Shown: one piece after another, positions 8,706 through 23,124 of the stretch | Layout of the letters: every line of letters starts with the position of its first letter | Numbering within the stretch: position 1 is the stretch's first letter | NCBI GenBank assembly: GCA_009103225.1 | Contig: RHPI01002533.1 | Location: 1,617,186-1,681,185, forward strand | Reading direction: 5' to 3' | Origin: Chlorokybus atmophyticus | Taxonomy: Eukaryota > Plantae > Mesostigma and Chlorokybus algae | Length of the DNA: 64,000 bases | Translations under genes and position numbers: made by a program | The notes under the pieces: model-generated | Databases searched by the model: none | What the model saw: the letters and a program-made list of their open reading frames with translations, nothing else | Told to the model about the DNA's origin: nothing

Positions 8706-11700
8706 ATGGCTAAGATCGCGAGGTGTGCGCTACTGGCGGTAGCAATCCTCATCATCACAGCGTCGTTTGATCTTGTATGGCATCCTGTAGAAGCAGCGGC
8801 GACCTTGTCAAGCAGGCCCCTTGCGTTGCTGGAGCCGGAGTATGGCGTGTACTTTGGCGTCAACATGAACAACAGGTGCTGATCCTCGATTGTGTTCGTC
8901 GATTGGGTGTGTACGAGATTAAACGTTTCAGCAACCTGGTAGCACAATGGTTGAAACTGTAAGTTCATAAAAGTTGAGACAATCCAGCATTTGTCCACAA
9001 TGGAGTAAGTTGAGCGATTGTCTCAGTTTCAGAATTGATCTTGACCATGCCGTGCCAAATGATGCGCGCGGCATTCCTTCACAATCAACGCGTATACACA
9101 TCGTCTTGTTCTCGACCTGTTAGCTAGTACACATGTGCAGCAAGCAGGCTGAATTGCCTTGCAAGCACAAAGTGCCCGCAGTTTAGACTAAACACGTCAC
9201 CAGTCGGTCACACAGAACTTGCCACTGCCCAGCTGTCAGCTTCCGTATTGCACACGCAAGGAATAGGCAATGATCTAAGCTCAAACTGACATCAACAACC
9301 ACAAATAACACTACCACCACCACCACCACCACCACCAACCACCACCACTACTGGCAGCGTGCCATTGGATGCGTACGAGGCCCAGCTGGGGCTGACGCCA
9401 GCCGCGTACGTGATCTTCATCGAGTTCCCGCTGCAAGACAGCGACGTCGCTCTCCTCCGGGGCTTCTTCGCAAAGGTGAGAGAGTGGGTGTGTTTGCTAC
9501 CTTTGAGCAGCAGATAGTGGACCAGCGCCACCGTGAAACCCACACGCACGCACGCACACGCATAGGCACGCGTTCGCACGATGCCACGCGCGGTTGCGCA
9601 CAGGCACATACACCCGAACACGCAAAGCATCTGCACATGCGCGTGTGCGTGGCATGCACATGCACGCACGATCATGTCCGCACGCGTGTGGTGGTTTGTG
9701 GTCACGCACACGCGCACAGCACACCCACACCCACACCCACACCCACACCCACACCCACACCCACACCCACACCCACACCCACACCCACACCCACACCCAC
9801 ACTCCCCCCTCCCCAGCTCGCCCCTCTGGGCGCCCTCGCCGTCGTGACCGCCGAGCCCGTCTCCGGCCTCTCCCTCGTCTCCGAACCCGAGTGCCGTCGC
9901 CTCGGCACGGAACTCGCCGGCGCGGAGAGGGCGGGAGTCGGGGGGGTCGTGGTGAGGTTCGCGCACGAGATGAACGGGAGCTGGTATCCGTGGAGCCAGA
10001 GGCCGGGGGAGTATAGGGAGAAGTTCAGGCTACTGGCCAAGTGAGTTGGGGGGGGTGTACGATATGTGGTTGGGTGGTCGTGGTATGGATGTGGGGCTGG
10101 GGTGTGCGGGGCCAGTGTCACAACCACTGCTTTGCACAGACTGTGGGACTAGTTGTTGTTGTGCGCTCGTTTAATCGGAGCATCCTGCGACCCCGTGTTT
10201 GACTGACCGCTCGTTGGGGTTTTACTTATTAGCCCGTGGTTGTTGTTGTTGTTGCGCTCAACTTATCTTTTGTTGTTTGTGTGGCAGGGTGATCAAGGAG
10301 ATGACGTGCAGGACGGCAATGCTTTGGGCTCCCAACAACGGCGGCGGCTACCCGTTCTCGGGGGGAGTGTACGAGTGCCGAAAGGGCGAGTGCGACGACT
10401 TCAACGTAAGCATGGCAAGAAGTGGTACATGTATCAACACATCCCAACATACTCCTCCTCGTGCAGCTCCTCGACACGGACGGCGACGGCGTGTTGACCA
10501 TGGCGGATGACATGTACGAGCCGTACTACCCGGGCGACGACGCGACGGACTGGGTCGGAATGACCATCTATCACTGGGGACTCAAGTACCCGTGGGGAGA
10601 GAACCACGTGTCGGAACCGCTGCAGTTCTTCCAGATGGTGGGCGAGAGTGTGTATTTGTGCGTGGGCGTGGGCGTGTATATCTGCTCACGTGTGCATTGC
10701 GCGTGCGCCTCTGTGTGCGTAAGTGTGTGCGTGTACGCGTGCGTGTGAGCCTGCGCGCGTGGTGGCATGCGCGCGCGCGCACGCGCCTGCGTGCCTGTGA
10801 GCCTATGTGTGTGCGCGCGCGCATGTTCGTACGTGCCTACGCGTGTGTCCACACGCGTGTATATAAGTGTGCGTGTACAAGCGTTATGCCTGCTTGATTG
10901 GCGTACGTGTGCGCGTGTGCGTGCGCATGTGGGCGGATTCATATATCTCTCGTGCGTCCCCAGTTCACTGGCACCTACAACGGCAGCGACGGCGACCAGA
11001 CCGCCGTCCCGGACTTTTACGCGACGTACAGCGGCGAGGACAGCGTGCACGCCAAGCCGTTTGCCATCCCCGAGACCGGCGCCTTCTTCAACACGGAGTA
11101 TTACGGACCTGGGGACGACGAGTTCAGCATCAAACAGGCGTGGTGGATACAGGTAAGGCATTGTCGTTGCTGATGTTGCTGTTGTTGTTGTTGTTGTTGG
11201 CAGTATCATCGAGCTACAGTAAGCGACAATACTATACACGATGTTCTTGCTATTGTCGAGTTGTTGTTGTTCTGAGTATATGCAGAGTTGAGTGACTGCA
11301 TCATGATGTAACACACACCTCCTGCGTAGGTGTTCAACGTGTACGGCGACAACTCGTACGCGGTGGACATCTCGGTCCACTTCCCTCGCATCCACATGAT
11401 CAACTGGTTCGACTGGAAGAAGTCCGAGCAGGAGGCGTATGGCGGCGACATTGTCGACTGGTCAATCTCGCTTAACCCCTCAGTAAGTGACTGTGAACAT
11501 ACACACCCACTCTCTCACATATTGCTCACCTGACTCAAACTGTGTGTTGGGGTAGATTCGTGACGCGTTCAAGAGCTACATCACGCGTCCGATGGCGGAC
11601 GGCCGCACGTACGTGAAGCTACGGCCGGAGCTTAAGTGGGAGCTCGGCGCCATTGATACGTCCCTCGTGCCCAAGTCTATGAAAGTGACCAAAGGTGAGA

Positions 11701-14700
11701 AGTACACACGCACCCGCACAAGCACACATGCGGGCCTGCGACACGCATGCGCAAACACATGCACTCATGAAGACATTACCACAAGCCAGCACGCGAGCAC
11801 ATCCGTTCAAGGATGCATGCGTGCGCACACATACGCACACACACACACACATACGCACGCACGCACATGTGTACACGCGCACACGCGCGCACGCATAAGC
11901 GCATGCACAACCCTGTACACACCACGGCAAATAACGTACACTCACGCCCACATTTCAGACCCGTGGGTGGTTCCCCTCCTCGTCCACACCAGCTCTCTCT
12001 CTGACGTTGGCGTGGACCTCTTCGACTCCTCCAACCCCTCCACCTACTACGCCGGCGGTCGCTACCCCAACCTCACGCTCGGCACCCACAACATCACCGT
12101 ACCCATCTACTTCACATCCCCGCACTCTTTCCCCACATCACGTACACTCTCACTACGCGCGTACCTCGTCCCACCCGGTGTCGACGCCGCCACGTACGCG
12201 TGCATACGCGCCGCGGACGACGTGTCGATACACGCCGAGAGGGGACCCAACATGGGTTTGGCCAAGAAGCATGTCACCACATTAGCGGGACCGATCACGT
12301 TGGCGGCGTGCGTGGGTGGGCTGGGGTTAGTGTGGGTGTGGGCAGTGTGGGGGAGGTGGAGGGATCAGAAAGGGAAGATGAAACACGCGCATGCGGGAGC
12401 GATGAGGTATGCGGCTTCAAGAGGAGATATACCGGCACTCGATGTAAGTAGTGTGTGTGGTGGTGTGTTTGGAGTGACTGAGTGAGTGAGTGAGTGACTG
12501 AGTGACTGAGTGACTGAGTGAGTGAATCTCTCTTGCCCCCCCACNNNNNNNNNNNNNNNNNNNNNNNNNNNNNNNNNNNNNNNNNNNNNNNNNNNNNNNN
12601 NNNNNNNNNNNNNNNNNNNNNNNNNNNNNNNNNNNNNNNNNNNNNNNNNNNNNNNNNNNNNNNNNNNNNNNNNNNNNNNNNNNNNNNNNNNNNNNNNNNN
12701 NNNNNNNNNNNNNNNNNNNNNNNNNNNNNNNNNNNNNNNNNNNNNNNNNNNNNNNNNNNNNNNNNNNNNNNNNNNNNNNNNNNNNNNNNNNNNNNNNNNN
12801 NNNNNNNNNNNNNNNNNNNNNNNNNNNNNNNNNNNNNNNNNNNNNNNNNNNNNNNNNNNNNNNNNNNNNNNNNNNNNNNNNNNNNNNNNNNNNNNNNNNN
12901 NNNNNNNNNNNNNNNNNNNNNNNNNNNNNNNNNNNNNNNNNNNNNNNNNNNNNNNNNNNNNNNNNNNNNNNNNNNNNNNNNNNNNNNNNNNNNNNNNNNN
13001 NNNNNNNNNNNNNNNNNNNNNNNNNNNNNNNNNNNNNNNNNNNNNNNNNNNNNNNNNNNNNNNNNNNNNNNNNNNNNNNNNNNNNNNNNNNNNNNNNNNN
13101 NNNNNNNNNNNNNNNNNNNNNNNNNNNNNNNNNNNNNNNNNNNNNNNNNNNNNNNNNNNNNNNNNNNNNNNNNNNNNNNNNNNNNNNNNNNNNNNNNNNN
13201 NNNNNNNNNNNNNNNNNNNNNNNNNNNNNNNNNNNNNNNNNNNNNNNNNNNNNNNNNNNNNNNNNNNNNNNNNNNNNNNNNNNNNNNNNNNNNNNNNNNN
13301 NNNNNNNNNNNAATCCAAGGCAGGCCCAAGCCCCTTCTCTCTCTCTCAGCTCATCGAGCGTCACTCCCCCCTCTTCCTCATCGACTCCTCCGTCTCCGGC
13401 TACACGGCCCTCCACGCCGCCTCCGTTGCCGGTCACGTCGCGGCGCTGGAGTGGCTCCTGCGTCGCGGGGCCTCCGTGCGTTGTATCAAGGAAGACGGGT
13501 GGAGAGACACCGCGCTGCATTACGCGGCGGCGAATGGCAACTTGGCGTGCGTACAGGTAGGGGGACGATACTAGGTGGATGTGGGTGTGGATGATGGGTG
13601 GTGAAGACTGTTGCTCCCCAGGTGTTGGTGGCGCATGGGGCTGACATATTTGCGAGGAATTTCTGTGATGCCACGGCGGCGGATTTGGCGGAGGCGGCGG
13701 GGAACAAGGAGATAGTGAGGTATGTTTCTTTTCTGTGTTTGTTTGTGTTTTTGCGGGTTGAGAATGACCACCCGTGCATGCATTGAGGTGTGATACTACA
13801 CTGCAGAAATGCACAAAGAACACAGAGTAGTATGCACACGAGCATTGTCCTCAAGAGCTACCTGCTACAGGTACTTGGAGAAGATCGGTGAGCAGATTAC
13901 CAGTGGGAGTGAATCACCAGGCCCTAGATCATCTGTTCGAGGAACTCCACTCTCCTTTGAAAGACTCGAATCACTCCACAACGAGGACAATGAGGACAAG
14001 CCTGAGCATGCCGAGCACGCGCACCACTTTAGAGAACAAGTCCAAGGACTCACTGTGGCCCTCAGTGCTGCGCGCATGTTGTTGGACAAGCGTGCGGCCA
14101 AAGCCAACAGCAACAACAACAACAACACGGGTCGGTCCTCCGTCAGATCTCCTGTTGGGTTGTCGCGCTTCGCTGCCAATGTGGAGGAGGACAACAACGA
14201 GGGTGAGGGTGAGGGTGGGAAGGGTGTTGTTGTCGGGGAGGTGAAGACAACGACTACTACTACTGTGGCGAACAGCAATGGAGAGAGGAAGTCGAGGTTC
14301 GCCTCACGTGTAAGATTCCAAGCTGATGAGGAAGAGGATGAAGTGAATGCTGCTGTGGTTGGCACCCCGGTGCTGTTCTCAACTGAAGATGACGGCGACA
14401 ACAACAACAACAACAGCAATAACGACGGTTCTGCAAGCGATGTTGTGGATGCAGAGGACGTGGACGTCGCCGAGGTCGGCGCACCCGTAGTGTTCTCGGT
14501 GGAACTCGATGACAACAACAACAACAACAACAACACCAACAACACCAACATGCATGACGACGGAGCCGACGTTGGTACACCTGTTGTGTTCTCGTTTGAG
14601 GACAGCAACAAACCTCACTCTCAATTACTTGACCGTCACGTGCGGTTTGGGGGTACGATGGACCGAGCAGGCAAGTCTAGCCCGAGACGGTTCCCGGTTA

Positions 14701-17700
14701 CTCCCCGGCAGGGAGAGATCAACACTAACCGGCTGAACCCGCTTGCCCGCACGCCCGTGTTCAATACTATTGTTGATGGTGGTCATGAGACTACAACAAC
14801 TACAACATCGCAACAGCTCAAGCAGAGTCCCACACTGGACTTGAGTGGTGATGATGGTGAGGGTGATGGTGAGGGTGAGGGAGTGGAGAGAAGTGAACAG
14901 ATTGCGTCGTTCCCGTTGGAGTTTGATGCGTCGGATGATGAAGGGGACACTGCGACGGGTGATGCAGAAAGTCAGATGGTAGACAATGTGGACAAGCCGT
15001 CACCCGCACCGCCGCGCACACAACCTGAAGGTACGCGATACACAGTTGCATAAGCGCTTGCTCACGCGCACACATGTATACATGTTGCGTGCGTGTGCAC
15101 TCGGCAACATGCGTGCGTGTGTGCGTGCGTGGCAGCACATGTTGTGTGTGAGCGTGAGAGCGTACTGTGTGTGAGAGCGTACGTGTGCACCTGTGCCCAT
15201 GTGTCAGAAGAGAATACTTTTTGTTATTGAAGAACGTGTTGCTGTTGCTGTCCCAGTTGATGGTGTTGCCGTCGGTCACGACGCGTTGAGCGTCCTCAGC
15301 GCGGCGTTGCCCCGCCTCAAGCTGCACAAAGCCCAGGAGGAGGCCGCCGCCCTCTCCCGCCTGTCCCCGCGACGGTTATCGAAGGAACAGCACGCCGAAG
15401 GGCGACGACAATCGAAGGAACAACACGCCGAAGGGCGACGACAATCGAAGGAACAGCACGCCGAAGGGCGACGACAATCGAAGGAAGAACAACACACAAC
15501 GCACCCACAAGCACAAGCACAAGCGCCAACGCCAGTGCAAGCGCAAGCACAAGCCCAACTAGATGCCTCCCCCTCGCTGCTTCGCGCCAACCACTCCATC
15601 GCCGCACATCGATTGGAGCGCTGGGAGACAAGCGTCGGCACAACACCCGACAAGTGGGTGTTACACCCACCCACCCCCACCCCCACCCCCACTCCTACTC
15701 ACTCACTCACTCACTCTCTGCAGTCGTTCTCCAAGGGTGTTGTCTGAGACCAAGTCCCTGACGCCCTCCCCCCGCGAGCCCCCCCGCGACGCGCGCGCGG
15801 TGCTGGAGCGGGGGTGGGAGGGGGCGGGCAGCGCGGGGACGAGGTTGAAGGAGGGGACGTACGTCTGGAGGACGCTGGCAGTCATGTGCCAGGTAGGTGG
15901 GTCGTGTGTGTGTGTGTGTGTGCGTGGGTGGGTGGGGGTGGGGGTGGGTGGCGGCGTGCATGGTTATGTGCATGTGTGCGTGTGCCTGTGCATGTCTGTG
16001 CGCCTGTCTGTGCATTCGAGTGCATGAGAGTGTGCGCGTCTGCGTGTGTGTGACCTGACGTTGAGTTGCTTCCTTGTGATTTCACGTACCTTTTGAAGCC
16101 ACAGGGTCACAACCCAATACACAGTCTCACGATCACACACTTAAAGCAAGGTGTCCGACACATATTGCTCACAGGTGTTGGGCGTGATCTACTTCATCTG
16201 GCGCGCCCTTCGCACGTTCAACCCCAACTACATGCCGCTGAGCATCATCTTCTTCGTAGCAGAGTTCATCTCCTTCATACCCTCTTTCATCTTCGTGCGG
16301 GAGATGTGGTCACAGATCGAACGCGACACGCGCTCGCTGGACGTGAGTGTGACTTGTTGATGATGGTGCTGGTGTGGTTGTCTCACGTGTGTTATTGTGA
16401 GCAGGAGTTGGGTATACCCGAGGACGAGTATCCCAACGTGGACGTGTTGATCCCGTGCTACACCGAGCCGGTAGATGTTGTCGAGGCCACCACGTGTGCC
16501 GCCCTCGGCATGCTCTACCCGCCCTCAAAGTAAGTCTCATTGCATGCATGTGCATTGTGTGTTGTCTTACCGTTATGTTGTGTCTGTGTGTCCTGCAGGC
16601 TGACCGTGTACATACTTGATGATGGCGCGAATGATAATGTTCGTGCTATGGCACATAAGCTCGAGTTCCAACGCAAGTACCTGAAGCGACAGGCGCAAGT
16701 CATCTATGTCTCACGCAAGAAGGTGATTGCACCCCTCTTCCGCTTACCGAAAGAACATGCGAGTAGACACTCGGCCAAGCATCCGCGCACTCATCCAATC
16801 ACGAGAGCGCGTGTGTGTGCGCGTGTCAGTAAACACACACACAGTGACACACGCACACGCACACACACGCACACGCACGCACGCACATGCACTGATGCTT
16901 GCACGCACACACGCACAAAAACCTCGCACATGCACTCGCACTCGTGTGCACCCCACTCACACTCACACTCACACCCACCTCAGGTGAAGGGCGTTCCCCA
17001 CCACGCCAAGGCGGGCAACATCAACCACTGCTTGCTGAAGGCGGGCCACGCGCGGGGGGACTACGCGGTCGTCTTCGACTGCGACATGATCGCCAAACAG
17101 GTACACATGATACACACATACACACACACACACACACATGTGGTCAACACTCTCCCCCCAACGCAGAGCTTCCTGATGCGCACGATGCCGCACTTTTGCA
17201 TCCAAGCACGAGATGGCAAGTGGCGGTTTAAAGAGAAGGCAGCATTCTTGCAGACACCACAGGTGAAAAGGAGAGTCACTTGTGCGTGTGCGTGACACAC
17301 AGTACTCACCCAACATGCATGCCCACACACAGGACTTTTATAATGTGGAGCCAAGCGATCCTATGGGCCACCGCGCGCGCTTCTTTTATGGACCCATGAT
17401 GCAGGCAAGCAGAGTGTGAACAACACTCGACACACACACATACCCACTCTCTCAATCTCCCCTTCTGTTGGGTCATCTCACTCACTCGTGTTGTTGTTGT
17501 TGTACAGGGCCGTGACGGCGCGGGTGCGTGTCCGTGTGTCGGCACCGGCGTTATCTTTCGACGCGACGCGCTCGTCTCCATCGGGGGACAGGTGACTACA
17601 CAGCCGTCTGTCACACGCCATGTGTGTGCGTGCGACAACTACCACTTCAAGTAATGTTGTTGATGTCGTGTGGGCTGGCAGGCTTACGGGTCTGTGACAG

Positions 17701-18042
17701 AGGACTACAACAGCGCAATGTGCCTACAGGTGAGCCAACTTGTACATCGCATGGTGACATGTTGTCCTGTTGCCTGTGCACTCATGATATGTATGTTATG
17801 TTGTGACAACAACAGGGTGCTGGTTTTGCGTCGATGTACCTCAACTCGCGCATGATCTTCGGGATGGCTCCCGACGACGTGGCCAACACATTCTCGCAGC
17901 GTCTGCGCTGGGCCATGGGCTCCCTGCAGGTTTGTGTGGGTGTGTGGGACATGTGTACACCATGTGTACGTGTGTCTATTCTCTCTCCATCAGTGTGCTT
18001 GTAGTGTATGAGGACCCCTGAGGTCCCAAGCATTGAGGCTTA

Positions 18043-18085
<43 letters not shown>

Positions 18086-20590
18086 TCTGTGCCGAGACAA
18101 CCCGCTGCTTAAATCAGGACTCACGTGGACGCAATCGCTGCTGTTCTTCCAATCTGCTTTCCAGTACGACAATTGTGAATAGTGAATACACACCCGCACA
18201 CCCGCACGCATGCACGCATGCACAACATCAGTCCAACATCACCCTTCGAAGTCGATACGCTGCAACAACTCTGCATGTTTCTGTCTCAGGTATGTCATGA
18301 GCGTCCCCACCCTCTTCATGGCCTGCATCCCCGTGGCGTACTTCTTCTTCTCCGCCGCCCCGATATACGCGCTAGTAAGTGTTGGCGATGTTGTATCATA
18401 CACACATACACACATAAACACACACTCACTCACTCTCTGACCCTGTCTCATCCTCTCAGATCCATGAGTTTCTGGTCTTCTTCTTCGGGTACTACCTTGT
18501 GAACCGATTGATGCTGTGGCACGCACACCGCGGGGTAGAGGGAGGGGACTTGGAGCTGTGGAGAGGATCGCAGGTTATGTGTGTGTATGTGTCGGGTTTG
18601 TGTGTCTGCATATGTGTGTATGTGTCGGGGGAAAGTAACTCACTGCCTGTCCTGCTCCACGCAGATGTGGGTGTGGTGCAGCCCCAACAACCTCCTTGCC
18701 TGCTGGAAAGTCTTCTCAACAGAGTGGAAGGTACTCAGCTTCCTCAAACTTGGAAAGGTACACCTCGACCCCAACATCCCACACTGCCAACACTTGTTGC
18801 CATGCACCCACACCCACACCCACACACCCACACTCAGGTTGGTTTTGCGGTGACGAGCAAGGGTCCCAAGAACGCCAGCTGGCATACCGAGCTCGCCACT
18901 GCTCTCAAAGACACATGGCACTTTGTCATGTACTACATCTTCGCCGTCGCGGGGATGGCGTATGTTGTGTCGCTCATCGCGAGAGACAAGCTTGCCATGA
19001 CGCAGATCGGGTCTCAGGTGTGTGTGTGTGTGTGGGGAGGTGTTGTTGTTGTTGTTGTTGTTGCTCAAAGCTCGATTTGTTACACTTGGCACCAGGCTGT
19101 GGCGGCGCTTTGGTGTGTTCTCATCATGGCTTACGTGTGGCCACCGCTGTCCACGCTGAATATATGGCGAAAGGCGCAGACAGGAGGCCAGGTATGAACT
19201 GTATCATTGATGTTGTTGCTGACACAACATCGATAGCAAACGATCCACATCACATTACAACAACCACAGGTGTTGTGGCACACGCCTCGTGCGCAAGACG
19301 CTCTCCCCTCGCGTCCCGCCACGCTTCGCAAGTCCACATTCAAGTTCCTCCAATCCATGAAGAAGTCCTTCTCGCTCAAACGCACCGGCTCCAACTTCGC
19401 CCGCACGCCAACCAAAGCACACACCAACATGGACACCAACACGGACACCATGAACACATCTGATGCGGCCACTGCTGCCAACACTGCTGCCAACAGCGCG
19501 AGGGACCCCTTAGCTGAAGCTGGCTTCAACAGAGAGAGTCTTAGATTGAACACTAAATTGAGAGTCAACACAATGAGGCCCGCAAGATTGAGCGAGGAGG
19601 GGGGGGAGGAAGAGGGGTTGAGTGGTGAGGAGAGGGCGAGGATGGGGGCTGTCAACAATAAGGCCGAGTATCGACGCACGACACAGGTGAGTGGGTGTGA
19701 GTGTGGGTGTGGGTGGGTGGGTGGATGTGCGTGTCTGCACGTGCGTGTGAGCATGCGTGTTCACATGCGCGCACACGCATGCCCATATGCATGGGTGGGT
19801 GAGTGCCTGCCTGCGTGCGTGTGCGTGTGCGTGTGCGCGTGTTTGCATGCACACGCGCCCATCGCATGTCCACCAACATGTGCTGTTGTATGCACCAGAT
19901 GGTGAACGAAAGATTGAAAGGCGACGAGGAGATGCAGCGCGACATCGCATTGCTCTACGCCCTCTCCACCAACGACAGCGACGACAGTTCAGCAGATCCC
20001 AACAATGCCAGCAGCAACGCCAACACACTTCACCCCTCACGCCTCGGCCTCGCACCGGACTCACCCGCAGCACGCGCACTCTCCTCATTCCGTGCGATGG
20101 TGAACGCATCCGCATCATCATCAACAAGGTCAATGGACTCAAACAACAACTCAGCCGCATCATCCATGCGAAAGGGAGGAGACTCGTTTGCACGTGTTGT
20201 AGGTAAGTGTGGTGTGGACATGCTTGTGCGATGTTGGGTTGGGTTGGAGTATACTGTATCATGTGGTTATGTAACACATAACTGTGTGTTGCAGCGCAAG
20301 TGTATCCGAGCGAGGACTTGCGACAATCTTTACGCAGGCAACAATCGATGCATCCGAAGGACTCGTTGCACGAGTTCACGCGGTACATGACTTCTCGAGT
20401 GGTTTATGAAGAGACAGTGTTAAGGGACCACGCGTCGCTGGTAGCCACGCCAACGTTTCGGTTCAAGAAAGCCAAGCATGACAACTACACGTTCTTGATA
20501 GTGAACTGCATCATGTTCTTGGCGTTTGGGATTGGGGGAGCACTGTACCTGATACTAGAGCAGCCGCCGGAGGACTGGCTAGGATTTTAA
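8706..20590 (+). CDS. Multi-exon GH26 glycosidase - TM - ankyrin - BcsA/cellulose-synthase-like GT2 fusion protein
   Basis: Signal peptide MAKIARCALLAVAILIITAS. GH26 motifs RFAHEMNGSWYPW (E 9967), YYPGDDATDWVG and KPFAIPETG (E 11072). TM ITLAACVGGLGLVWVWAVW followed by RWRDQKGK. Ankyrin repeats GYTALHAA and DTALHYAAANG. GT2 motifs VDVLIPCYTEP, YILDDG, HAKAGN, FDCD, FLQTPQ, TED (17697), QRLRW (17897) and FAVTSK. Splice phases were checked by hand for exons 1-3 and from the last pre-gap exon through the GT2 N-terminus; the remaining exons were assembled from the ORF track. One N gap (12545-13311) lies in a presumed intron. Confidence 0.8.
9718..9800. repeat. (CACACC)n hexanucleotide microsatellite in intron 2 of the fusion gene
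   Basis: Seen directly; it is the source of the spurious PT/HP/HT ORFs. Confidence 0.95.
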
Positions 20591-21165: not shown

Positions 21166-21654
21166 CCCCCCTCCCCAGCTCGCCCCTCTGGGCGCCCTCG
21201 CCGTCGTGACCGCCGAGCCCGTCTCCGGCCTCTCCCTCGTCTCCGAACCCGAGTGCCGTCGCCTCGGCACGGAACTCGCCGGCGCGGAGAGGGCGGGAGT
21301 CGGGGGGGTCGTGGTGAGGTTCGCGCACGAGATGAACGGGAGCTGGTATCCGTGGAGCCAGAGGCCGGGGGAGTATAGGGAGAAGTTCAGGCTACTGGCC
21401 AAGTGAGTTGGGGGGGGTGTACGATATGTGGTTGGGTGGTCGTGGTATGGATGTGGGGCTGGGGTGTGCGGGGCCAGTGTCACAACCACTGCTTTGCACA
21501 GACTGTGGGACTAGTTGTTGTTGTGCGCTCGTTTAATCGGAGCATCCTGCGACCCCGTGTTTGACTGACCGCTCGTTGGGGTTTTACTTATTAGCCCGTG
21601 GTTGTTGTTGTTGTTGCGCTCAACTTATCTTTTGTTGTTTGTGTGGCAGGGTGA
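21166..21654 (+). repeat. Apparently exact 489-bp duplicate of 9804-10292 (GH26 exon 3 plus intron 3)
   Basis: Constant offset of 11362 at both ends. Bounded by a poly-C run on the left and a single N (21655) on the right. Confidence 0.93.
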
Positions 21655-23124
21655 NCAGAATTTTGACGCGCTAATATGCATAATATTGCCTCCAATTGAT
21701 CAATTGAGTATCCATCATTAGATTAACATATGCAAATTGAGTGTGATGCATTGTTGTTGTTTAGCTTGCTCTGTTTGCACACTTGCTTGTTCTACTGTGG
21801 CCCCTCTTCGAAACCTGGAGTTTGCTTCACCGACCAACTCTACTGTTGGTTATATACGCATCATATATTGCACATAGAGTATCTTGTGTGCACGCAAGAT
21901 AATATGTGATTGAATCTGTGTGCAATATATATAATTGTTGAAACTTTCGCAAGAGCAAAGTATGTTTTGCGCTTTATGTTATGCGCTTTGTAATTGTAAC
22001 TGTGCATGTTATTCACTAACTTACGTGCAGTGATGCATCATCATACAGTGGGATAGTATTTTTGTTCAAGGTACTCATTTGCTGAAAAGATTGCACAATT
22101 GTAAAAATTCAGCTCATGCATGATATATCATACATGAGCTGGATCATGATAATGCACCATATGACCATATTAATGAGTTCAACCACACCATCTGGCTGTT
22201 AGAAGATGTTTTACTCAATTTTTGCATTTGTACTTTGTTGCATACGTGATTTGTTTATCGTAGATGAAGTGATGTGTAGTTATAGTACTGAACCCTAACA
22301 ATTGCGGTGACATAATATCAAACCTTATTTATTGCACAAAAAACATGTTGACCAACAATACTCGATATTATTGACGCTACACAGCAAACTCATATAATTT
22401 GTTGCATATTTCACATGATTATTTCACACCAAAAATATTCCTCAAGAATGGTCAAACGGATACAACTTATATGATTCATGTTATCGCAGTTTAATAATCA
22501 AGCTTAATAAAATAACAACCGACATATTCATGTCGTAAACACATTTTTAACGCAATTGCTGCAATATAATTCAATGCGGCATTACGTGATTGCATTATAA
22601 TATCTCATGCACATTTACGAGCAATATTAATGAGTTCGTTTATAAACTGAACGGCCATTATTAAGAAAAATGTGTTTAAAAGACCGTTTTGTGTTCGTTC
22701 GGGCTATATAATAATAAGCAATAAAAAATAGAACAAACAAGCATGTAGCAGTACATATGTCAAAGATATGTCATAGAGTATAAAGTATTATTATTTTACG
22801 ATGTATACCTTTTTATAAGTTAAATTAAGTACAATTATCATCGAGTACAAACCAAACCCATGATATGATTGATAATTATCATATTGCATATTTTCTAGTT
22901 AACATTATAACATCTTTGGTGGCAAAATGTTTTACGATCATCAATCATATCGTCGTTGTCCGTGTTGCAAGTTTATGTGTGTCATGTTGTAAATTAAATC
23001 CGAAATATTGCATATAACGAAAACGTTGTTGGCAAAATAAAAATAATTATCATTATTGCTCCGGTACGTATTCGTTTGTAGGTGTAGGTGCCCATACGCA
23101 GGTTCAAACCCAGCCCTAGGTATA

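Follow-up and report, generated by a model that had tools for sequence, protein, structure and literature searches.

A predicted processive GT2 synthase with ankyrin repeats and a GH26-like ectodomain, from an old green-algal family, in Chlorokybus atmophyticus

The streptophyte alga Chlorokybus atmophyticus carries, at 8706-20590 on the + strand of a 64,000-nucleotide stretch of its genome (assembly GCA_009103225.1, contig RHPI01002533.1, positions 1,617,186 to 1,681,185 of the forward strand; hereafter the window, in whose coordinates all positions are given), a single long gene in which 16 short exons (48-180 nt, between 15830 and 19191) encode an intact processive GT2 synthase. The explanation favoured here, with a probability of about 85%, is that of a native, expressed nuclear gene for a membrane-embedded processive GT2 beta-glycan synthase, belonging to an old green-algal family of proteins with ankyrin repeats ahead of the GT2 core (ANK+GT2), whose nearest prokaryotic relatives are PilZ-less cyanobacterial synthases and which is distinct from both BcsA and plant CESA/CSL. 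That a streptophyte alga has a synthase of cyanobacterial and not of plant type is in line with published work; it mainly corrects the label of BcsA-type enzyme that a sequence-only reading of the window had proposed, and the idea of a recent transfer. The added value lies in the link of the synthase with ankyrin repeats and, for a small subclade, with a GH26-like ectodomain; new here are this architecture and the repaired gene model.

The order of domains along the gene is signal peptide, GH26-like ectodomain, transmembrane (TM) helix, ankyrin repeats, low-complexity linker, GT2 core with two TM helices before and four after the catalytic domain, and a tail with a last TM helix. The annotated product, P0162 (EukProt jgi/Chlat1/298/Chrsp1S08782, 2015 aa), maps to 9359-20587 with about 100% identity (tblastn and exact mapping). 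The introns of the GT2 core measure 62-282 nt, are rich in CA/TG repeats and are all of the GT-AG type, except for a GC-AG intron after 17404. The features of the gene are as follows, E0 to E15 being the exons of the core and the contigs those of two public runs, X1 and X2, described below.

8706-8876, + strand: first exon, with start methionine and signal peptide, ending in YFGVNMNN (translation; alignment A2 with the homologs P0159 and P0160)
9359-11672, + strand: GH26-like ectodomain, seven exons (P0162 by tblastn and exact mapping; weak Pfam GH26 match; PDB match; A2)
11994-12482, + strand: open exon covering the ectodomain's end, the first ankyrin repeat and, between them, a TM helix (about 12294-12350) (open frame, hydropathy, P0027 match at 12276-12476)
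12545-13311, no strand: assembly gap (run of N) within the ankyrin region (sequence)
13350-13723, + strand: ankyrin-repeat exons (Pfam Ank families, E 1e-12 to 3e-14; ankyrin regions of the homologs match here)
13875-15030, + strand: long low-complexity linker exon, spliced to 15257 (P0162 mapping; contig joint 15030>15257)
15257-15892, + strand: two linker exons, 15257-15651 and 15725-15892, the latter being E0, whose end forms the first TM helix of the core (contig pieces 15250-15397 and 15466-15653; X2 contig joining 15892 to 16175; P0162 mapping)
16175-16342, + strand: E1, end of TM1, IYFIWRALRT and TM2 with FFVAEF (exon translation)
16405-16529, + strand: E2, start of the GT-A domain, VDVLIPCYTEP (exon translation)
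16599-16722, + strand: E3, DDG motif (exon translation; joint to E4 in an RNA-like contig)
16984-17100, + strand: E4, HAKAGN and DCD (contig joins 16723 to 16985; segment kept in 9/9 aligned homologs)
17167-17262, + strand: E5, ending in QTPQ (exon translation; 3' intron common with Klebsormidium and Micractinium)
17333-17404, + strand: E6, DFYNV...GPMMQ, followed by the GC-AG intron (exon translation; homolog alignment)
17508-17591, + strand: E7, GRDG...PCVGTGVIFRR...IGGQ (exon translation, motif alignment)
17682-17729, + strand: E8, AYGSVTED with the TED motif (exon translation)
17816-17929, + strand: E9, QRLRW motif (exon translation)
18084-18163, + strand: E10, ILCRDNPL and start of TM3 (exon translation, homolog alignment)
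18290-18374, + strand: E11, TM3 (exon translation, hydropathy)
18460-18573, + strand: E12, TM4, ending in WRGSQ (exon translation; joint 18573>18665)
18665-18757, + strand: E13, interface helix MWVWCSPNN... (RNA-like contig joint; family consensus WVWxxPNN)
18838-19017, + strand: E14, gating loop FAVTSK and TM5 (exon translation, hydropathy, structure model)
19096-19191, + strand: E15, TM6 (P0162 mapping; gap-free homolog alignment)
19267-20590, + strand: C-terminal extension of three exons (about 19267-19650, 19896-20202 and 20295-20587) and stop codon (joint 20202>20295; P0162 mapping)

The GT2 core holds all the features of a processive cellulose-synthase-like enzyme: the D, DxD, TED, QxxRW and FxVTxK motifs and a GT-A domain combined with a TM channel. 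Its motifs, among them all those listed in the sequence-only reading, lie in short + strand exons flanked by canonical splice sites: IYFIWRALRT at 16187-16216, FFVAEF at 16250-16267, DDG within 16612-16629, HAKAGN at 17002-17019, DCD within 17074-17088, QTPQ at 17251-17262 (end of E5), DFYN at 17333-17344 (start of E6), TED within 17691-17705, QRLRW at 17897-17911 and FAVTSK at 18844-18861. Exon bookkeeping gives spacings of about 41 aa from DDG to HAKAGN, 36 aa from DCD to QTPQ and 58 aa from QTPQ to TED, while hydropathy and the structure model agree on two TM helices before the GT-A domain and four after it. Exons were searched singly and the whole-domain analyses were run on the public protein P0162; single-exon searches of Pfam and the PDB proved too weak for any classification. 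The GT2 region of P0162 reached E 6.7e-64 against TIGR03030 and E 3e-36 against BcsA structures, and on these scores the assignment to GT2 is far beyond chance.

An AF2 model built from an alignment of 56 sequences has the cellulose-synthase fold, with a local confidence score (pLDDT) of 87 and a global one (pTM) of 0.85; it supersedes an earlier run from 10 sequences (pLDDT 59.8). Foldseek matched the model to BcsA with E 2e-29 and to CESA with E 2e-19, the TM-score being about 0.7 for both, and the structure therefore informs on the working of the enzyme and not on its family membership.

Membership was approached through homologs, the first of which came from a HMMER search with the stop-free stretch holding E3-E5, followed by word-index searches with the P0033 domain, the Nannochloropsis protein P0171 and a family profile (A1). 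The closest homologs are all ankyrin+GT2 proteins: a Klebsormidium nitens 'cellulose synthase catalytic subunit' is 52% identical over the GT2 region by BLASTP (57-58% in multiple alignments), P0159 and P0160 are 45-48% identical, proteins of Nannochloris, Micractinium, Chlorella, Hariotina, Picochlorum, Tetradesmus, Scenedesmus, Symbiochloris and Pycnococcus/Pseudoscourfieldia about 40%, and homologs of the chytrid Boothiomyces 38-40%. According to Pfam, the ankyrin repeats lie N-terminal to GT2 in Klebsormidium, Nannochloris, Pycnococcus and the chytrid as well. Farther away stand the Nannochloropsis cellulose synthases and other stramenopile and labyrinthulid proteins, then PilZ-less cyanobacterial enzymes (about 30%) and BcsA with PilZ (about 28%). 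In the family-profile search the cyanobacterial enzymes rank right after the family members, at 445-471 bits, and no plant CESA/CSL, Tft1, AGlcS, oomycete or red-algal protein was among the matches listed in the word-index searches.

A maximum-likelihood tree of 50 rows and 559 columns (LG+C20 PMSF), from which four long-branch rows and eight near-duplicates were left out, joins Chlorokybus to Klebsormidium with supports of 99/95, and recovers the ANK+GT2 clade (100/97) and a clade of all the eukaryotic sequences (100/98). Eukaryotes and PilZ-less cyanobacterial enzymes are together separated from BcsA with PilZ at 100/100. Within the green-algal clade branch the ANK+GT2 proteins P0165 and P0167 of the chytrid Boothiomyces sp. 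JEL0866, grouped at 100/100 with a metagenomic protein, a placement which may reflect transfer between alga and chytrid.

The comparison with bacterial BcsA left one half of the earlier label, 'BcsA-type, not plant CESA/CSL', standing. BcsA (R. sphaeroides 4HG6/4P00, E. coli 7LBY) is the top solved match at 128 bits, and shares with the algal protein the GT-A core, the QxxRW helix, the FxVTxK gating loop and the channel. However, P0162 scores 216 bits against TIGR03030 (cut-off 699) and 156 bits against NF008558 (cut-off 992), whereas a true BcsA used as control (P0207) reaches 920 and 1040 bits, respectively. BcsA has four TM helices on either side of the catalytic domain and a PilZ domain, in contrast to the 2+4 arrangement found here, and QTPH, FFCGS and VETVTED where this protein has QTPQ, PCVGTG and YGSVTED. 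The earlier observation that no PilZ motif is evident holds, as Pfam detects PF07238 neither in P0162 nor in the C-terminal exons, whereas the BcsA matches have it. Taking equivalog cut-offs, topology, motif states and tree together, the gene is judged not to be a proteobacterial BcsA, and the 'BcsA-type' half of the label falls; the exclusion of plant CESA/CSL remains supported by the sequence features discussed below.

PilZ-less 'PCR-type' synthases have been described in cyanobacteria, such as Nostoc alr3757, Npun_F1469 and A2118 of Synechococcus PCC 7002, with 2+5 TM helices and no PilZ, A2118 having been linked to cellulose in vivo (PMC12430437, PMC4851311). They form the sister group of the eukaryotic sequences in the tree, and likewise place two TM helices ahead of their GT domain; QTPQDFYN is identical in the Nostoc enzymes. 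They differ in an insertion of about 110 aa directly after DDG, which the algal family lacks, in having FYTGTN in place of PCVGTG, and in being devoid of ankyrin repeats, glycoside hydrolase (GH) domain and introns. This 'PCR-like' insert, seen in P0176, P0361 and other Nostoc-type proteins, is absent in every eukaryotic relative in the tree.

The ANK+GT2 family is probably the published CslP family (Feng et al. 2024, Nat Genet; PMC11096116, preprint PMC9915684), matched by description (length, taxa and nearest bacteria). As defined there, CslP is a microalgal family with a mean length of 1474 aa, occurring in streptophyte and chlorophyte algae and absent from land plants, nearest to cyanobacterial and Chloroflexi cellulose synthases and separate from CESA/CslD/CslQ and CslA/C/K; its members include Zygnema CslP1/2 (Zci_01910, Zci_11882). 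The long proteins, the algal range and the cyanobacterial nearest bacteria all fit the ANK+GT2 family, while the text consulted makes no mention of ankyrin repeats or of a GH26-like domain, both of which are present here. CslP is placed there as sister to CslO, the family of the moss arabinoglucan synthase AGlcS (including Pp3c12_24670), which groups with fungal Tft1.

The best surviving alternative, still an unlikely one, is that the gene belongs to this AGlcS/Tft1 (CslO) clade and makes mixed-linkage glucan (MLG) or arabinoglucan. It can draw on the proximity of CslO to CslP in the same source, on a wall very low in alpha-cellulose with glucose-rich hemicelluloses and on MLG reported in the class of Chlorokybus, on a lichenase being, marginally, the best solved match of the GH26-like domain, and on the most similar large Atlas cluster by protein-language-model features, a mainly Ascomycota GT2 group of 652-aa proteins which is probably the Tft1 family and is a lead only. 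On the other hand, CslO proteins average 659 aa and are described without long N-termini and with no ankyrin or GH domains reported, whereas the gene and its whole clade encode proteins of 1100-2000 aa with ankyrin repeats, that of Chlorokybus having 2015 aa and a GH26-like domain besides. Neither Tft1 nor AGlcS outranked the cyanobacterial enzymes in the family-profile search, and no fungal or moss protein stood above or among these enzymes in the word-index searches. Moreover, the question of the product is separate from that of membership. The relationship to AGlcS/Tft1 raised by the sequence-only reading came near the mark: by the literature, this would be a sister family of that clade and not a member of it.

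The other idea of the sequence-only reading, horizontal acquisition followed by intron gain, fared worse when taken as the recent arrival of a bacterial bcsA in Chlorokybus. Greater closeness to BcsA than to plant CESA and the lack of plant-specific insertions speak for it, but the gene falls below the BcsA equivalog cut-offs, has no PilZ, shares ankyrin repeats and C-terminal TM helix with its algal homologs, and falls within a group of eukaryotic algal genes, its sister being that of Klebsormidium. Of the introns, those after E3, E5, E7 and E13 match exactly four of the seven Klebsormidium introns in the region (about 0.19 expected by chance), three or four positions coincide with those of Micractinium, a chlorophyte (0.5-1.3 expected), and the intron between QTPQ and DFYN is common to all three algae. 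Shared introns and tree therefore exclude a recent transfer into Chlorokybus, to which a very slight probability is still assigned; any transfer would be older than the splits within the streptophyte and chlorophyte ANK+GT2 family. Read together with the tree, these positions place the gene, with its introns, in early streptophytes and, probably, as far back as the green algae's common ancestor, which sets the family in the nuclear genome of early green algae. An ancient cyanobacterial origin of the family, endosymbiotic or otherwise, fits the data.

Contigs of the public run X1 fall on exons only, and contain spliced joints at 15030>15257, 16722/3>16984/5 (E3>E4), 18573>18665 and 20202>20295, which shows that the gene is transcribed and that its splicing follows the model. 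Run X2, another sample of the same study, gave a spliced contig 97% identical to E0/E1 (16172-16301) that joins 15892 to 16175, and which probably represents an allele, a paralog or a sister strain.

The public gene model has five local errors. In P0162, E4 is started at 17041, with the loss of 18 residues (16984-17040) including HAKAGN; three residues absent in all homologs are added after E6 (17405-17413); a spurious mini-exon of 13 aa, found in no homolog, is inserted at 18005-18043 before E10; and E13 begins 18 nt late, at a wrong acceptor (18665-18682 lost). The 13-aa insert is a gap against BcsA and the sole internal stretch of the model with pLDDT below 50. At all four of these places in the GT2 core the repaired exons agree with 9/9 aligned homologs, and two of the four junctions are backed by spliced contigs. 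Furthermore, the public model missed the signal-peptide exon at 8706-8876, whose final YFGVNMNN matches the start of the GH26-like domain at the N-termini of the homologs in A2. The repaired exon model is a new contribution, restoring HAKAGN, removing the two insertions, correcting the E13 acceptor and adding the signal-peptide exon. A start of E15 at 19075 was dropped in favour of 19096 on the evidence of the homolog alignment and P0162 mapping. The intron at 17405-17507 is of the GC-AG type with donor GCAAGC; the public model uses a GT donor 9 nt downstream, and the homologs favour GC. P0162 also crosses the assembly gap by way of a 20-nt intron at 12327-12346, which is implausible.

That the gene is an inactive relic or pseudo-enzyme, to which the low depth of the RNA-like contigs and a public model without HAKAGN might have pointed, is hardly credible: the loss of HAKAGN is an annotation error, the exon being undamaged in the DNA and a spliced contig making use of it, no catalytic motif is impaired, every frame is open and the structure model is confident.

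The weakest alternative, a divergent plant-type CESA/CSL, can be dismissed as of negligible probability despite the VGTG and YGSVTED-like motifs, the arrangement of two N-terminal TM helices, the overall fold and a TM-score of about 0.7 to CESAs which it has in common with plant CESA, given that the protein lacks the RING finger, the plant-conserved region (P-CR) along with the CSR (class-specific region), which are features of plant CESA, and that plant CESA chains match it in fragments at 36-50 bits as against 128 bits for BcsA. The earlier claims on these three features are borne out, CxxC being absent from the 1140 residues that precede the GT2 core, with no Pfam zinc finger, no insertion in the alignment between DDG and HAKAGN (where about 45 aa had been estimated, and about 41 were counted), and no class-specific insertion in the short spacings from DCD to QTPQ and from QTPQ to TED. 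By sequence, BcsA entries of the PDB score 127-128 bits and CslF6 32 bits, the plant CESA/CSLF6 structures (6WLB, 7D5K, 8VHT, 8DQK) spanning 32-50 bits at 16-18% identity, and no land plant was found among the listed homologs with a named source organism (about 120 listed per search). On this evidence, the gene is taken not to be a plant CESA/CSL.

Several points weigh against the favoured reading of a native green-algal ANK+GT2 synthase. X1 and X2 have been taken as RNA runs by guess, and their contigs are few and of low depth, none spanning the gene; P0162, on which the whole-domain work was done, carries the four local errors of the GT2 core; and the ankyrin region is interrupted by the assembly gap. 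In addition, the tree was built without plant CESA/CSL, CslO (AGlcS, Tft1), oomycete, red-algal, amoebal and tunicate sequences, and the equation with CslP goes by matching descriptions and not by shared sequence. The data show the structure of the gene, its splicing, the integrity of its motifs, the fold, the family placement and the age; activity, donor sugar, product and what the ankyrin and GH26-like parts do are inferred.

With regard to the remaining domains, the GH26-like ectodomain scores 16.1 bits against Pfam GH26 in P0162 (cut-off 20.2), and 20.8 and 22.2 bits in the homologs P0159 and P0160. Its best PDB match is the lichenase CtLic26A (E 8e-4), followed by a mannanase (E 3e-3), a margin too small to decide between them. 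The candidate catalytic glutamates lie in FAHEMNG (9958-9984) and AIPETG (11063-11086), and those of HEMNG and IPE(T/V) are invariant in the three proteins aligned in A2 (P0162, P0159 and P0160). The ankyrin repeats, detected by Pfam Ank at residues 508-597 of P0162 (window 13359-13571; E about 1e-14), are separated from the GT2 core by a linker of about 550 aa of low complexity. The predicted topology is self-consistent, with the hydrolase outside and both ankyrin repeats and GT-A domain inside the cell. The same order of GH26-like, ankyrin and GT2 parts is found in P0159 (ectodomain 50-560, 45% identity) and P0160 (165-720, 36%), so that the architecture recurs in at least two other organisms; P0160 is moreover a complete open reading frame of a transcript assembly, which supports a single messenger for the fusion.

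A GH8-like domain stands N-terminal to the GT2 core in P0172, from the labyrinthulid Mucochytrium quahogii, and in P0043, from the protist MMETSP0098, again a glycoside-hydrolase-like domain and a cellulose-synthase-like GT2 on one chain. This is a second, independent hydrolase-synthase fusion, and hydrolases have therefore been joined to such synthases more than once. Tunicate CesA, which carries a GH6-like domain, is another synthase-hydrolase fusion. Unlike these three, the protein of Chlorokybus has a hydrolase that is GH26-like, N-terminal and extracellular, with its own TM helix, and ankyrin repeats and the linker separate it from the GT2 core.

A mechanism may be outlined from these parts. 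The cytosolic GT-A domain, with DDG, DCD, TED and QRLRW, would add sugars from a UDP-sugar, most likely UDP-glucose, and the growing chain would leave the cell through a channel that the enzyme itself forms from six TM helices, under the FAVTSK gating loop and presumably with no control by c-di-GMP. The ankyrin repeats probably dock partners; outside the cell, the GH26-like ectodomain probably trims the product or sets it free.

As to the product, the earlier suggestion that it may be non-cellulosic retains its force: cellulose cannot be assumed, and a non-cellulosic beta-glucan is plausible. Cellulose is favoured by the nearest characterised relatives, A2118 and the Nannochloropsis enzymes, which are tied to it. 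A non-cellulosic beta-glucan is favoured by the wall composition, by the MLG/arabinoglucan sister clade, and by the GH26-like domain with its conserved glutamates and lichenase match. Chlorokybus has been reported to have the lowest alpha-cellulose fraction of six species, in which the fractions amounted to 5-45% of wall residue; its hemicelluloses are rich in glucose, and there is a report of MLG from its class. Being almost without alpha-cellulose, Chlorokybus has in this enzyme a direct candidate synthase of its glucose-rich wall polymers. A beta-1,4-glucan is given somewhat less than an even chance, another beta-glucan a slightly smaller one, and something else a small one. Tentatively, and as a possibility well short of an even chance, the protein may be pictured as a 'make and trim' machine on a single chain, proper to early-diverging streptophytes, in which an ankyrin-tethered synthase of cyanobacterial descent would make a non-cellulosic beta-glucan (e.g. 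glucose-rich hemicellulose or MLG) and its own extracellular, lichenase-like GH26 domain would process the emerging chain.

Some minor observations concern the layout of the gene. A segment of 492 bp within the GH26-like region (9804-10295) is duplicated at 21166-21657 with 99.8% identity. The duplicate, which stops at a single N (position 21655), probably stems from the assembly and is not a second gene copy, and no other sign of a second copy was found in the window. Between 15380 and 15500 an 11-aa unit of the linker, SKEQHAEGRRQ, is repeated in tandem about 3.5 times. Finally, the tail after the GT2 core has 310 aa and ends in a TM helix at 20498-20554, which is conserved in Klebsormidium (P0153:1329-1347).

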